A stretch of 64,000 nucleotides of DNA from Prasinococcaceae sp. CCMP 1430 (taxonomy: Eukaryota > Plantae > Prasinodermophyta). Location of the stretch: NCBI GenBank assembly GCA_013416795.1, contig RQSC01000025.1:1-64000 (forward strand). The letters are read 5' to 3'. The notes under the pieces are model-generated. The model saw only the letters and a program-made list of their open reading frames with translations, did not search any database and was not told the DNA's origin. The translations under genes were made by a program, and so were the position numbers. This document shows positions 14,535-32,986 of the stretch, piece after piece; position 1 is the first letter of the stretch; every line of letters starts with the position of its first letter.

Positions 14535-15970
14535 GGCTCGACGTGGCTGTCGTCGGAGCCGGGCCCGCCGGGCTCGCCACGGCGCACGCTCTGCTGTCGG
14601 ACGCTGCTGGCGCCAACGTGTCGAGTGTCACCATTTTCGAGCGGCGTGAAGAGCTCGAGGATGCGGTTGGGGGAGGGATCCAACTCAACGGCGGTGCGGC
14701 CATCCTCGCTCGCCTGGGACTGCTCGACGACTCGCGAATCACCGAGGTGCTGCTGCCCTGCAAACGCGTTCGCAGCCGACTCTGCCTGCGCGGCGACCTG
14801 ACAGCGATTGACGTGGACGTGCCCGCCGCGATGACGCGATGGCCAGACGCGGCGGAGCTCGCCGCGCGGCCGGGCCGAGAGGCGCTGGCATTCTGCTCAA
14901 TGCGCGGAGCGCTGCAGGGCGCCCTCGCGGAGACGCTGCCAGAAGCTGCCACGCTACGCTTAGGTTCCAACCTCTCAAGTGCGCGCGAGAACGCCAACGG
15001 AGGTGCCACGCTCACATTTGCAGATGGTAGCGAGGAGAGCTTCGATCTCGTCGTTGGCGCCGACGGCATAGGCAGCGCTGTACGCAGGTCACTCGCGGCC
15101 GGCGCAGCCACCAACGGCAGCGCTCGTGCGCCCGAGGCTGAGTACTCGCGCATCAGGTTGCTCCTTGGGGTCACCCCCGCTGATGAGGAGCAGTCTGGCG
15201 GACGGTCCGTCCGCCCCGCGTCTGAGCGCGCGGAGATGCATCAGTGGTTTGGCGATGGCGCCTACGCCCTGCTCGCTTCGTACCGTGGCGTGGGCGGCAG
15301 GCTGTATGACCAGGTGGTGGTGTGTGAACGTGACGACACGGAACGCGAGGAGAATGCGTCGTATGAGCGTCGTGCAGGAACGCCTGAAGAGGCGCGCGAG
15401 GCGCTCATCGCATCCGCGCGGGCCGCGCGCTTGCCGAAGGAGCTGCTGGACGTAGCGATGCGCTCGGAGAGGGTCATCGAGGTCGGCGCGCACTGGCACG
15501 ACATCGGAGTCCCGTGGACCTCGCCTCTCGGCTCGATGGTCCTGCTGGGCGACGCAGCGCACGCAATGCCGCCGTTTCTGGGGCAGGGCTGCAATCAGGC
15601 GATGCAGGTGCGCGCAGGCACCCCACCGCGCGCGCGCGCTGCGGCGCGGTGCTGCTGAGCATTGCGTTCCGAGTGCCTTGAGCTGACGTCCTCCGCTTCG
15701 CTATCCGCTGCGCGCGCGCCGTGCCAGGACGCGTGGAGCCTCGCTGAATCGCTCGCTTCGGAGCAGACCCTCCTGAGTGCCACGCGGCGGTACGAGTCGT
15801 CGCGCAGGGAGGCCGTCGAGCCCGTGCTGCAGAAGAGTCGCTTCATCGGATGGCTCGAGACCCAGAGCGGCAGCCTGGGCACGCTTGCACGCGACGCCGC
15901 CCTGACCGCCGCGGGAAAGCTGGGCGTGGCAGAGTTCATCTTCGTGGACGGCGCCGTGCCGAGGGTGTAA
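14535..15970 (+). CDS. FAD-dependent monooxygenase (zeaxanthin epoxidase/salicylate hydroxylase-like); intron 15608-15727; first exon unresolved
   Basis: VAVVGAGPAG, GGGIQL, DLVVGADGIGS, LLGDAAHAMPPFLGQGCNQAMQ|DA. Confidence 0.88.
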
Positions 15971-16139
15971 GAGCATGGGTGCGTTCCTCACAAGCCTGTC
16001 TGTGCTCGTCCCGACAGATCTCAAAGTCTGCTGTGAATTCAGATGCAGACGCTCGCATGTGGCCACATTTTGGATATGCTCAGGTGGATAAACACACGGC
16101 GCGCGGCCTGCGCCCCCCCCACCCTGCGGGGGTAGAGCG

Positions 16140-16556
16140 ATGGCGCCCAAGCGCGCGCGCCGCGCGGCCGCCACCGCCGCAGGCGGCGACGGCGAGGGCA
16201 TGGGCGCGGCCGTGCCAGACGAGGCGGACGTGGCGCGCATGCGCGAGCGCATCCTCGCGCTGGTGCGGGCGCGCGGTCCTGCCAAGTCCTGCTGACCCAG
16301 CGAGGCGCCGCGCGGTGTCTCCGCCGCGCGCGCAGAGTGGTATCCGCTCATGCCTGCCGCCCGGGAGGCCGCGCGCAGGCTGGCGAAGGAGGGGACGCTC
16401 GAGATCCTGCAAAAGGGCGCGCCCGTTGACCCAGATAGCTTCAAAGGGCCCATCAGGCTCAGAGCGCTCCCTCCCGCAGCCGTCATCGGCCGCGCAGACG
16501 ACTCGGCGCGCGGAGATGACGCCGAGGCGGCCGCCAAGCGGCAGCGCAAGCGGTGA
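16140..16556 (+). CDS. DUF3253-family protein with in-frame UGA at codon 52 (16293-16295), predicted selenocysteine; 138 aa
   Basis: Read through TGA it gives ILALVRARGPAKSC*PSEAPR...W.PLMPAAREAARRLAKEGTLEILQKGAPVDP..FKGPIRLR, matching the DUF3253 pattern on both sides of the TGA; SECIS in the 3' UTR. Confidence 0.88.
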
Positions 16557-16567
16557 CACCACCGCGG

Positions 16568-16656
16568 CTCCCCCTCTTCCGACATGACGGCAGCTCGCAA
16601 AGGCACTCCTGCGGCAGGCAATGCAGCTGGCAGCCCGACGCGGGGAGGTTGGGGAG
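16568..16656 (+). promoter_or_regulatory. SECIS element, form II
   Basis: Folded by hand: helix I CUCCCC/GGGGAG plus CUCUUC/GGGGAG; A-UGAC (16584-88) opposite CGAC (16636-39); helix II 16589-98/16626-35 with 8 of 10 pairs; unpaired AAA 16599-601; apical mini-stem CCUG-cgg-CAGG. Confidence 0.82.
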
Positions 16657-17112
16657 GCGGAGAGGGGGACCTGGAGCGGCGCGCCCCGGCACGCGCGCAT
16701 CGCCCCGCGAGCGCCGCTGGGGTCACGTTAGGGTTAGAATTCGAATAATTCAGGTATTGAGTCATGTAGGGTTTAGTCTCAACGTTGACTCGTAGGAAGA
16801 ATATCCAAAACACGGATCGTTTGCGAGTGATTCCATTTCCGTGAAAATCGAATGGGGTCTGATACGAGAGGCGCGCTGCGGCGCGCGCGCGACAATTGGC
16901 AGCGCGGAGCGCACGGCGGGGCGGCGGCGCGCGGCGCCACACGCAGCGCGGCACGGAGGAGCAGGCGGAGGTGGCCGAGGCCGAGGCCGGCAGCCGCGTA
17001 CTGCGCAGAGCTGCTGGGTCGCCAGCGGCGCCGAGAGGTCTGCGCGCGCGCCCGGACGCGGAGGATGGCGGCGGCGGGGAGAACGTGTTCGCGGAGACGG
17101 TGCTTGCTAAGG

Positions 17113-20100
17113 ATGGTGTGCTGTTGGCACGGCGTCGCCGCGGCAGCGCGCGCCGCTGAGAGGGAGCAGCGCGACGCGCCGCTTGCGGCGCGCAACGCCC
17201 CCGCAGGTGGGCGCGCGGGTCTACGCCGGGAGCTCAGCAGTCCGCCATGGGCGTCACATTCGGATTGCGCCGCGAGCGTGTTGGTCGCTGGAAGTGAGCC
17301 TCGCGACGTCCGCTTTCGTGGCGGGCACAGTGGGCGCGCTGCTCGCGCGGGGCGGCGAGAGGGCACGCGGGCACGCGCTTTTCCTGGGTGTTTTCGGCGC
17401 TATGCAGCTGGTTGACGCATCGCTGTGGTACGAGGCCGCACACGCGGAAGGTGGGCTGGCCGCATGCACATTACATAACCGCCTCGCCACGCGTGCTGGA
17501 ATCTCGATCATCGCGCTTGAGCCCGTGGCCGCGCTGTTCGGCGCGAGCGCAGCCGCGGGACGCAAGAATGGGCCGAACCCGTTCGTCGCCGGTGCGTACG
17601 TCCTGTTTTATCTGGTGTCTCCGCTCGTTGGCTCGGCGTTGCTCTCGCCAATTGAGGTCGCTCCGAGCTCAACTGCGCAGTCTTGCGCGTCCGGGGGGGT
17701 CGAGGGCCCACCGGGCGTCGAGCGCGCCCTGCCGGTCGTGCGGGATTGCAAGCGATTTCCGACGCGCGGGCTCCTTCTGGATCTGAGCGCTCCGGCCGTG
17801 TGCTCGACAGTGACGCCTGGAGGGCATCTCCAGTACGGCGGCATGGACATAGTGTATCATAACCTGCTCACGCCACCGGAATGGGGGCTCGAGGAGGTGT
17901 CGGTGTGCGAGCTGGCGCCGGGTGAGCTGTGCGAGGGCGGTGCAGCGACGTTTTTCGGCAGCAGAGAAATCCCGCTCGGGCTGAGGCTCGCGTACCTGCT
18001 CGGCATGGTCATCCCGTACCTGCAGGTGAAGCCCCGCGCCGCGGGCTTCGCGCATGGCACCATCCTCACTGGCACCTGGATGATTGGTTACTTCTCTGAC
18101 GCCCACGCTTCGGTGTGGTGCCTCGCGAACGTGGCTCAGGGTCTGCTCATGCTGGCCGAACCTGCGATTTGGCCCGGCCTGCCCAAGGACGGCACGTTCC
18201 CGCCCCTTGCTCTTGCCGAGGGCCCCACTGGCGCGGCCACGATGTCGTCTGACGACTCAGAATCAGACGCCGGCGGGGAAAGCCCGGGCGGTGCCGCCCA
18301 GGTGTTTGCGGCCTCCGTGACGCCACCCTCTCCGACGCCTGCGTCATCGCCCGCGTCGGACGCGACGGCCAAGCTTGCCGAGCCGCACCCGCCGCCGCTA
18401 CCCCCGAGGGTGAAGGAGAAGCGCTACCCATTCCGCGAGAAGGAGTTGCCCGAAGATCTGGATGCCGTCATAATCGGCAGCGGCATCGGTGGACTCGCCC
18501 TCGGGGCACTCCTCGCCAAAGCTGGGCAGAAGGTACTCGTCCTCGAGGCGCATTACAGGCCTGGCGGCTGCACTCACGCGTTCACTGAGATCGGCGAAAA
18601 CATCTTCGATTCGGGCATCCACTACGTGGGCGGCGCGAAGGGACCAATGCGCACGCTCCTGTCGCACGTGTGCGCGCACCCTATCGAGCTGGCCTTCATG
18701 GGCTCCGAGAAAGACGGATACACGTACGATTTGTTCGACATGGGCGACGGTGCCCAGCCGCTGTACAGCTATCGCGCTGGAGAGTTGATTGAATCGCTCA
18801 CGGAGCGATTCCCGCACGAGGCCGATGGCATTCGCAGCTACATCAAGGACGTGCGCGGGGGTGGTATCCTCGACAACGGCGTGGTTCTGTCCAAGATGCT
18901 ACCCGACGGCAAGAGCGTGCCCTGTGCAGGTCGCTTGCGATCGTGGCTGTGGTCGAAGGTGCGCGCGCGTTCACCCGAGGTCACCGCGCGAGACAAAATT
19001 GCCGAGTACGTCAAGGATCCGGTGCTGCGAGCACTGCTCAGCGGCGGCCAGATGATCGACTGGAATTTGGCACCCGGCGAGGTGTCGTGGCACGTGAGCG
19101 CGGGCATGCTCAACTATTACTTTGACGGCGGCCTCTATCCCGCGGGCAGCTCGAACACCATCCCACAGGCGATCATCCCCGTCATCGAGGCAGCTGGCGG
19201 CAAGGTCATGTGCAGCGCCCCTGTGAGCGAGATCCTCGTCGAAGAAGAGGCCGACGACGGGACGCTGCGCGCGGTCGGCGTCAAGCTGGCGCGGGGCGGG
19301 AAGGTGGTGCGTGCCAGGCAGGTGGTGTCCGCGGCAGGATATGTCAACACCTACCAGCGTTTCCTCACCGAGGAGGTGCGCGCTCGAGCGGGAATTACCC
19401 ACCCCGAGCGCGTGTTGAGCAACCTCAGGCTCAGCCACAGTCACGTCTGCGCTTATATTTCGCTGAACGGGCCGCCGGAGGACTTCGACCTCGGACCGGC
19501 GAACATACACAGCATGCCGGCGCTCTCGCACTACGACTACGACATACAGGCGATGCAGGACGCATTTTACGCCGACCCGTTCTGCCAGGAGGAGCTCGGA
19601 GGTTGCCTTATGACCCTGACCTGCCCGAGCGCGAAGGACCCTCGATATGCCGACGACTTGCCAGGGCGCTCAAACGTCCTGCTACTCATCGAGGGCTTGC
19701 ACGAGTGGTTCGAGCAGTACGCGAGCTCGAAGCACGGCCGCCGCGACGAGGGCTACACCGAGCTGAAGAGGCGGTTTGAGCCCATGTTTCTGGAGCGGCT
19801 GTATCGCTACTACCCGAAGACACGCGATAAGATCACGCACCTGGAGATTTCCACACCGCTCTCCGCCGCTCACTTCATTAACTCTCCCGGTGGAGCGTCC
19901 TACGGACTGGACTGGCGGCCCGAACACTTCGAGGAGGACCTCCACGAGGAGGCTTTCAGCCCGACCGTTCGCGGCATCGACGGTTGCTACGTCACCGGCG
20001 AGAGCATCGCCTTCGGTGGCTTCTACGGAGCGCTCGTCACCGCCTTCGCGACGGCCACTCACATGCTTGGGCTTTTGCCGACTCTGTGGCTCCTGGCGAA

Positions 20101-20155
20101 TGACCACGGTGCCGAGCCCGTGATGCTCAAGGACGGACGTCCGATGCGCGACTGA
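17113..20155 (+). CDS. Fusion of an N-terminal multi-TM domain and a C-terminal all-trans-retinol 13,14-reductase/phytoene-desaturase-like FAD oxidoreductase; probable intron 17116-17206 directly after an ATG
   Basis: DAVIIGSGIGGL, LEAHYRPGGCTHAF, FDSGIHYVG, YPAGSSNTI, STPLS...GASYGL; CWSLEVS...MQLVDASLW...C...N...EP membrane domain; ATG|GTGTGC...CCGCAG|GTG restores the frame. Confidence 0.82.
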
Positions 20156-31978: not shown

Positions 31979-32986
31979 TCACGCGTCCTTGGTTGCAACT
32001 AGTTGGGTGCACTCCTTCTGGCGCTCCTCCTCCGTGGGCGTGCCTATCACGGGGTAGCGATGGTGCTTGCCTGTTCCGGCGCGCACGACGCGCATACCCG
32101 GCACCGCCTCGACAGCCGCTGCGAGGAGCTCCGGCGCGATGAGGTGGAAGCCCGTGGGCTGGCGCAGCGATGCAGCGCGCGCGATGCCCTCGTCCATGCC
32201 CAGGCCAATCTGCCAATCGAACACCAGCTCACGCACGTTGAATATGCCCCCGTGGATTTCGCACTCCCCCGGCCAGCGCGCGCCGGCCTTCACGTTGGCG
32301 TCGTACGTCCGTCGGAACGCCGCGCCAGGGCGCGTCCGACTGACGGCAAAGTAAATTGAGGGGGCAGCCGCCGTGACGACGAGCGTACCGCCGGGTGCGA
32401 GCAACGACGCGAGCGCGCGGCAGCTCGCTTCGATTTGCGGCCCGCTCAGAAAGTGGAAGACCTCCGAGACCAAAATCGACGAGAACGTGCCGTGCTTGGC
32501 GACCAGGTCGGCCTCGGCGAGATTATCAGGCAGCCGGCCGAATGCGGTGGACACCACATCGGTCAGCTCAGCCTCCGCGGCGCCGGCCATCACCTCATCT
32601 AGATGGCGCGTGTCACAGTCAAGAGCAACCACGTGCGCGCCGGTTCCGCGCAGCGCACGCGCGGCCAGAAACACGTTGGCACCAAAGGCGCATCCGACAT
32701 CGAGCATCGGCCGCCGATGGCCCAGCCTCGCCGAGCCGTCGATCCACTCACGCAGGAGCGGCGAGCTACCAAACTGGAACCCGCCTGTGTTGAGCGTAGC
32801 GCGGACCTCGTCGTTGCCTACGTTGAGGTCCATCGCCGCGTCGAAGCTCGCGTCGCCCACGGCGACACGCGCGGAAGGGTGTTGCGCAGCCGACGCGAGG
32901 CCGCGCGCGCCGCGCCGGGACACGCTCGCAGCAGCCGCTGCCCCGGCCGCGGCCACACGGCGCACCAACCCCGTCGCCCCCGGCAT
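31979..32986 (-). CDS. Class I SAM-dependent methyltransferase with organellar targeting-like N-terminus
   Basis: MLDVGCAFG, VVALDCD, EVFHFL, LAPGGTLVV; R/A/S-rich presequence. Confidence 0.85.
   Translation of the reverse strand: MPGATGLVRRVAAAGAAAAASVSRRGARGLASAAQHPSARVAVGDASFDAAMDLNVGNDEVRATLNTGGFQFGSSPLLREWIDGSARLGHRRPMLDVGCAFGANVFLAARALRGTGAHVVALDCDTRHLDEVMAGAAEAELTDVVSTAFGRLPDNLAEADLVAKHGTFSSILVSEVFHFLSGPQIEASCRALASLLAPGGTLVVTAAAPSIYFAVSRTRPGAAFRRTYDANVKAGARWPGECEIHGGIFNVRELVFDWQIGLGMDEGIARAASLRQPTGFHLIAPELLAAAVEAVPGMRVVRAGTGKHHRYPVIGTPTEEERQKECTQLVATKDA

Follow-up and report, generated by a model that had tools for sequence, protein, structure and literature searches.

Sequence comparison indicates that positions 16140-16556 (+) of the window, as the whole 64,000-nt stretch analysed here is called, very probably constitute a real selenocysteine (Sec)-encoding gene with a SECIS element in its 3' UTR. 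The locus is a single reading frame of 138 codons and a stop, running from ATG 16140 to TGA 16556 and broken internally only by the TGA at 16293-16295 (codon 52), which is preceded by ...RARGPAKSC and followed by PSEAPR...; an earlier note on this DNA had described the same frame, and translation confirmed it. With Sec at codon 52, the coding sequence is complete and would specify 138 residues (137 standard residues and Sec52) up to the stop TGA at 16554-16556, as supported by translation, domain matches, and haplotype variants that are mostly synonymous on both sides of the TGA (ten haplotypes). The public gene call at the locus comprises the 68-aa downstream half alone (P0001, 16350-16556), as did the ORF list on which the earlier note had remarked. 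The window has a G+C content of about 68% and carries eukaryotic genes, e.g., those for an S10 carboxypeptidase and an organellar-type gyrase B. Two ORFs overlap the gene in other frames, one of 417 aa (15701-16954, -) and one of 245 aa (15850-16587, +); both are probably typical high-GC artefacts.

The 86 residues 3' of the TGA match the Pfam family DUF3253 (PF11625) with an E-value of 3.7e-19 and 69.1 bits over profile positions 23-80 of 81, exceeding the gathering cut-off of 22.1 bits. The same piece matches PDB 2ns0, the one solved DUF3253 member (phmmer, E 2.9e-11). The 51 residues before the TGA gave no domain match when searched alone against Pfam; in the comparison with orthologues, they continue the DUF3253 domain and resemble helix 1 of the bacterial proteins. 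The post-TGA match and the conservation of the frame on both sides uphold the proposal that the residues flanking the TGA follow the DUF3253 pattern. Based on Pfam, 2ns0, and a model of a Cys homologue, the winged-helix domain was placed approximately at 16227-16466 (+), the Pfam match proper covering 16296-16466 and the first 22 profile positions lying upstream of and including the TGA. Among 14 aligned Cys-type homologues, C-P-S does not vary and E hardly does. The window protein has the PSE of this C-P-S-E motif, and its TGA falls exactly on the C column, i.e., at the family Cys where the earlier note had put it. Sec is the usual replacement for Cys.

The 68-aa product is encoded on 19 contigs, nine of which, originating from different TARA and Logan samples, were fetched. 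These ocean-metagenome contigs come from the same strain or from sister strains; their identity to the window over 1 kb is 94-99%, and TGA stands at codon 52 in 9/9 of them, which confirms the codon in independent assemblies. The ten haplotypes show 13 variable sites in the 417-nt CDS versus 12 in 174 nt of the 3' flank. The changes upstream of the TGA comprise four synonymous and two non-synonymous ones, and those downstream four and three, respectively; in this small sample, both halves behave as coding in this frame. If the locus were a pseudogene or an assembly error, the TGA would be a nonsense change in a former Cys codon, and the splitting of the gene by gene callers into ORFs of 51 and 68 aa would fit such a reading; the identical TGA in nine independent assemblies and the leaning of substitutions towards synonymous ones on both sides of it argue against it.

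An exhaustive HMMER search retrieved 504 relatives at E <= 0.001. Many of the closest relatives are short products starting at a conserved Met just past the Cys site, the pattern expected if gene callers stop at the TGA. The DNA was examined for the loci of the closest relatives and for 69 further metagenomic loci. TGA occupies the codon in at least ten more divergent eukaryote-type lineages (loci L010, L011/12, L013, L014-16 with L039/40, L017-19, L020/21, L024, L031, and L084-L088), and every eukaryote-type locus among those fetched has an in-frame stop at the Cys codon, in each case TGA, never TAA or TAG. The sequence upstream of the TGA is conserved with the window (e.g., ...LIRERGPTKTC before the codon and PSEAPR after it, or ...MVRARGPTKTC and PSEIPR), and protein-level conservation spans the TGA in more than ten lineages. 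One eukaryote-type contig, with a PX-domain neighbour, carries a Cys form (P0012), and its relation to the TGA forms is the usual Sec/Cys interchange. The 58 remaining loci of the scan are bacterial-type, many of them with a DUF2256 zinc ribbon, and have Cys wherever the match reaches the motif, except for L074. The Cys/TGA alternation for which the earlier note had proposed to look is present, with TGA in many algal orthologues and Cys in P0012 and the bacterial-type homologues. No annotated orthologue was found in Chlamydomonas reinhardtii; this null search is uninformative, since the TGA would hide such a gene.

In the bacterial-type locus L074 (1440-1690), TGA stands at the Cys codon (SCI before it and PSE after it), the DUF2256 part lying upstream does not share the frame, and the sequence after the TGA shows no clear hairpin. 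For these two reasons, L074 was not taken to be a Sec form of bacteria, although it may be one, just as it may be a pseudogene or the result of an assembly error. As a TGA at this codon combined with a broken upstream frame, it speaks for a nonsense change as the origin of the codon in the window. However, the consistent use of TGA in ten or more divergent lineages and the protein-level conservation continuing across the stop render a pseudogene or assembly error extremely improbable for the window gene.

Two orthologues carry introns at or next to the codon. In Chlamydomonas schloesseri (KAG2447677.1, L010, JAEHOD010000020.1), the codon is split as TG/A by a GTGAG...CAG intron (L010:1230-1480), and KAG2447677.1 starts only at the Met after the Sec codon, being a truncated gene model. 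In Chloropicon roscoffensis (WZN63155.1, L086, CP151507.1, L086:1000-1520), the intron ends one codon before the TGA (...ACC TG/C TGA CCT), and the public protein WZN63155.1 is truncated too. These introns favour the possibility that an intron or alternative splice also removes the TGA of the window gene, or that its two halves are separate products. In both orthologues, however, splicing rebuilds the TGA. Furthermore, the alignment of the window protein with the domain is colinear and without a gap, removal of the codon would delete the invariant position, and no domain is matched by the 51-aa half alone, all of which makes splicing or two products a very unlikely explanation.

A SECIS-like element was located in the 3' UTR of the gene (16562-16660, +) and consists of helix I, an internal loop, the core, helix II, an unpaired AAA, and an apical stem-loop; the assignment is based on constrained folds in all haplotypes, the sole descriptor match near the gene, and the layout in orthologues. 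Helix I (16562/68-81 paired with 16641-60) starts about 12 nt past the stop, where the beginning of the hairpin had been noticed before. The 5' side of the core (AUGA then C, 16584-16588), also found by the descriptor, and its 3' side (C-GA-C, 16636-16639, with GA at 16637-38), which agrees with the fold, are invariant in all haplotypes, and the former corresponds to the Rfam SECIS_1 consensus AUGAcGg. The core lies 28 nt after the stop and 291 nt after the UGA of codon 52, matching the distance of about 290 nt given earlier. The 5' strand of helix II (GGCAGCUCGC, 16589-16598) pairs with the 3' strand (16626-16635) at 8/10 positions; the eight standard pairs are accompanied by two 1x1 mismatches and a C.C beside the core. 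The unpaired AAA (16599-16601), 11 nt after the core, represents the AAR motif of form-2 SECIS elements, and the apical stem-loop (16602-16625) is made up of 3 bp and 4 bp with a small loop, L005 having a 1-nt insertion in its internal loop; both features were obtained from the descriptor and the fold. Thus, from the form-2 geometry described in the earlier note, the AUGA/GA core, the unpaired AAA, the apical stem-loop, and helix I stand, whereas the "10-bp helix II" was overstated. The haplotype variants in the element keep or strengthen its fold: C16631U converts G-C to G.U and A16632G falls at a mismatch position, both in the 3' strand of helix II with the fold kept, while U16575C and U16650G close the internal loop of helix I.

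With respect to the Rfam consensus AUGAcGgcc...AAA...ggcCUGA, the window core AUGACGG...GCCCGA is standard. The element and Rfam SECIS_1 (RF00031) have the same AUGA-C-GG ... AAA ... CC-[CU]-GA core and spacing; the window element differs in its long apical extension and mismatched helix II. The Rfam SECIS models gave no match on the window even at E <= 10, which is not decisive because clear orthologue elements also score below the gathering score and the model centres on short apical loops. A loose automatic SECIS descriptor yielded 10 matches in 128 kb (both strands), i.e., about one per 13 kb of strand, corresponding to p ~0.01 for a match in a given 150-nt stretch; the window element was the only match near the gene. 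An alternative register of the inner segment is more stable by 0.9 kcal/mol, the SECIS-constrained fold of the whole region lies 3-6 kcal/mol above its free MFE, and the 125-nt fold does not exceed shuffled sequences in stability (z = -0.37). Taken alone, the window element is moderate evidence and the weakest of the set.

In ten orthologues, the unconstrained MFE structure of the candidate is the SECIS fold. The positions of the orthologue elements relative to the stop range from -3 to +52 nt, and the elements have different helix II sequences (GGCAGGCGCU, GGCGAGCGGC, GGCCAUUCG, GGGAUGGAUGC, AGAGUCUCGG, GGAUGCAGGUC, and others), and in 9/10 of them an unpaired AA is found 11-15 nt from the core. 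Without tuning, the descriptor produced 12 matches in 62 kb, seven exactly at orthologue SECIS sites. Rfam SECIS_1 matched two elements at the predicted place, L021 at 698-760 (32.1 bits, E 0.004) and L088 at 1488-1554 (31.9 bits, E 0.005), and L031 more weakly (20.9 bits), all three scores being below the gathering score of 35 bits for RF00031. The L088 element is the one most like that of the window. Form-2 elements of this kind, with long apical mini-stems, have been described for Ostreococcus and Chlamydomonas. Among the candidates, those of L010 and L084 are atypical, without the AA motif at the usual place, and no convincing SECIS was found for L011/L012. A MAFFT alignment of the SECIS elements did not align the structures, and a covariance model seeded from L014 and L040 was too sequence-specific, scoring true elements at 7-11 bits, among noise. 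In Chloropicon roscoffensis, the SECIS-like element (1397-1452) lies within the last ~40 annotated codons of WZN63155.1; either its C-terminus has been annotated wrongly or the SECIS forms part of the coding sequence. At L031:1716-1760, the core AUGA of the SECIS and the UGA stop of the gene itself overlap, making an extremely compact 3' end.

The orthologue hairpins settle the SECIS question that the window element had left at a moderate level. They also bear on selenium-free read-through, by which a leaky UGA-C would insert Trp, Cys, or Arg and the hairpin would be incidental. In all orthologues, the base after the UGA is C, which makes for a leaky context, and the window hairpin is imperfect and without an Rfam match, as such read-through would allow. 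Against it stand the SECIS-type hairpins right after the ORF in ten orthologues, two of them matched by Rfam SECIS_1, the use of UGA as the only stop, and the position itself, which is that of a conserved Cys, a classic Sec site; read-through of this kind is accordingly very improbable. The claim of a real selenoprotein that standard annotation truncates gains support from the TGA codons and SECIS hairpins of the orthologues, together with the 68-aa public call.

As for the mechanism, the UGA of codon 52 would be translated as selenocysteine within a 138-residue protein. The form-2 SECIS (~16562-16660, core AUGA 16584 / GA 16637) is expected to recruit SBP2, eEFSec, and Sec-tRNA, and the ribosome would then insert Sec at UGA 52 instead of terminating, while the second UGA (16554), 28 nt from the SECIS core, would serve as the true stop. 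The product would be a winged-helix DUF3253 domain flanked by basic tails, in which Sec replaces the one invariant Cys of the family. The Sec may be the redox-active or nucleophilic site of a module that binds nucleic acid, possibly in light/UV or photo-oxidative stress, a role to which the photolyase genes near the bacterial Cys forms point. A search of the 64-kb window detected no tRNA-Sec and only a tRNA-Arg. The latter, tRNA-Arg(ACG) (32243-32335, -), was called with a length of 93 nt, which exceeds that of a standard tRNA, and possibly contains an intron. The genome paper of Prasinoderma coloniale gives a G+C content of 69.8% and reports many selenoproteins (PMC7455551).

The AlphaFold model of the Cys homologue P0012 (pLDDT 85.5) is a winged helix composed of H1, a short H2, H3, and a three-stranded wing, with the invariant Cys just ahead of H2. 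Its top Foldseek match was 2ns0 (TM 0.82 on target), and further matches with weak scores included PadR, ArsR/SmtB, Fur, DsrD, and Z-alpha-type winged helices. By this model, the window protein is predicted to be a winged helix in which Sec caps helix 2 of the helix-turn-helix at its N-terminus. Cys51 directly precedes the Sec52 position. Most orthologues share this C-U dyad with the window protein; in the L014/L039 and L017 lineages, the residue before Sec is Met, and the dyad is therefore neither essential nor defining. The adjacent Cys and Sec could possibly form a selenenylsulfide. Basic stretches occur near both termini, P-K-R-A-R-R at 16146-16163 (+) and K-R-Q-R-K-R at 16536-16553 (+); orthologue tails also have basic clusters. 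These stretches are possible nuclear localisation signals, and the basic tails suggest that the algal proteins may be nuclear.

The bacterial DUF3253 proteins (PF11625; 2ns0 is Rhodococcus RHA04536) and the DUF2256-DUF3253 fusions have the same domain and winged-helix fold as the algal protein and share with it the motifs C-P-S-E, W-R-x-x-M, and G-P-I-R-L. They differ in having Cys, often an N-terminal DUF2256 zinc ribbon, and a photolyase-family gene within 1.5 kb in 17/58 loci, whereas the algal proteins have Sec and basic tails and lack both DUF2256 and a photolyase neighbour. A vicinal Cys-Sec pair is known from the C-terminal G-C-U-G of thioredoxin reductase, and by this likeness the adjacent Cys-Sec of the DUF3253 protein could act as a selenenylsulfide redox switch; the DUF3253 dyad, however, is internal, sits at a helix N-cap within a winged helix rather than on a flexible C-terminal tail, and is not conserved. 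SELENOH and the MGMT-like "MDP" are small nucleic-acid-associated selenoproteins with basic or DNA-binding features and Sec in place of a reactive Cys. They resemble the DUF3253 protein in these general features, no sequence relationship having been seen. SELENOH has a thioredoxin-like CxxU fold, and the Cys of MGMT belongs to a P-C-H-R loop that follows the recognition helix, rather than to a helix 2 N-cap. The catalogued algal selenoproteins follow the same logic as the gene described here, with UGA at a conserved Cys and a SECIS in the 3' UTR, and their genes were likewise truncated by annotators (PMC2375036, PMC7539508). The hypothetical proteins 1-3 of Ostreococcus (Lobanov 2007, PMC2375036), characterised by a C-terminal GCUG, a C-terminal CUGR, or the sequence GLUNIAQAG, are unlike the DUF3253 protein.

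The neighbourhood of the bacterial-type loci (58, within L022-L083, with flanks of <= 1.5 kb) was analysed as well. A photolyase-family gene (DNA_photolyase/FAD_binding_7 or DPRP) was found in 17/58, and a COG2907-like amine-oxidase gene (~435 aa) in 11/58, mostly just upstream on the same strand; in 4/4 loci inspected, the end of the amine-oxidase gene overlaps the DUF3253 start. An FAD monooxygenase was near DUF3253 in three of the 58. The adjacency of DUF2256-DUF3253 to photolyase or amine-oxidase genes offers a functional lead for two domains of unknown function, and by this association DUF3253 might be linked to light/UV responses. In the window, an FAD_binding_3 gene lies upstream of the gene and an Amino_oxidase-domain protein downstream, both belonging to Pfam families shared with some bacterial neighbours. 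Synteny with bacteria was rejected, the resemblance being a coincidence, as BLASTP showed only a generic dinucleotide-binding motif and the FAD neighbours in the window are not orthologous to the bacterial ones; tblastn found no photolyase or COG2907-like gene in the 64-kb window. The 990-aa ORF at 17183-20155 (+) has an amine-oxidase/NAD_binding_8 domain only at residues 426-741 and about 420 N-terminal residues without a Pfam match. Between the 3' UTR and the next ORF, a lower-GC stretch just past the 3' UTR contains the telomere-repeat-like motifs TTAGGGTTAG (16728-16737) and TAGGGTTTAG (16767-16776), which may be telo-box-type promoter elements.

To our knowledge, new eukaryotic selenoprotein families are rare. 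Jiang 2020 catalogued 42 algal selenoprotein families in 137 algae, three of them novel (PDI_e, AhpC_b, and SymSEP), and DUF3253 is absent from the family names listed there (PMC7539508). A term search of Liang 2019 yielded no mention of a novel family. "DUF3253" was absent from about 8.4 million full texts, a corpus of main texts outside subscription journals, and a mention under another name is possible; later literature searches returned nothing relevant on a DUF3253 selenoprotein. The remark in the earlier note that DUF3253 is not known among the catalogued selenoprotein families is consistent with this literature check and with the algal catalogues consulted. A broadly distributed family of green-algal DUF3253 selenoproteins is thus probably undescribed. 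The recoding mechanism is a known one; the fold and the likely biology are unusual for a selenoprotein.

By a modest preference, we favour a combined reading in which DUF3253 is an uncatalogued eukaryotic selenoprotein family and no earlier one has a winged-helix, DNA-binding-type fold. Under this reading, the family has been conserved between Prasinodermophyta on the one hand and Chlorophyceae and Chloropicophyceae on the other, derives from photolyase-linked bacterial proteins or is akin to them, and would use its Sec as a light/UV- or oxidant-responsive switch or as a nucleophile at nucleic acid. Being a winged helix and not an obvious thioredoxin-fold oxidoreductase, the protein would widen the range of folds that use selenocysteine. 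The truncated public records (KAG2447677.1, WZN63155.1, and the 68-aa call of the present locus) need re-annotation, and such truncation of public DUF3253 records implies that counts of the green-algal selenoproteome are underestimates. DUF3253 is a domain of unknown function with a structure that has been solved but left uninterpreted. The Sec/Cys pair marks one residue as chemically active, giving a first functional handle on the domain; combined with the photolyase genes near the bacterial forms, the pair points to a role in light or UV stress that can be tested.
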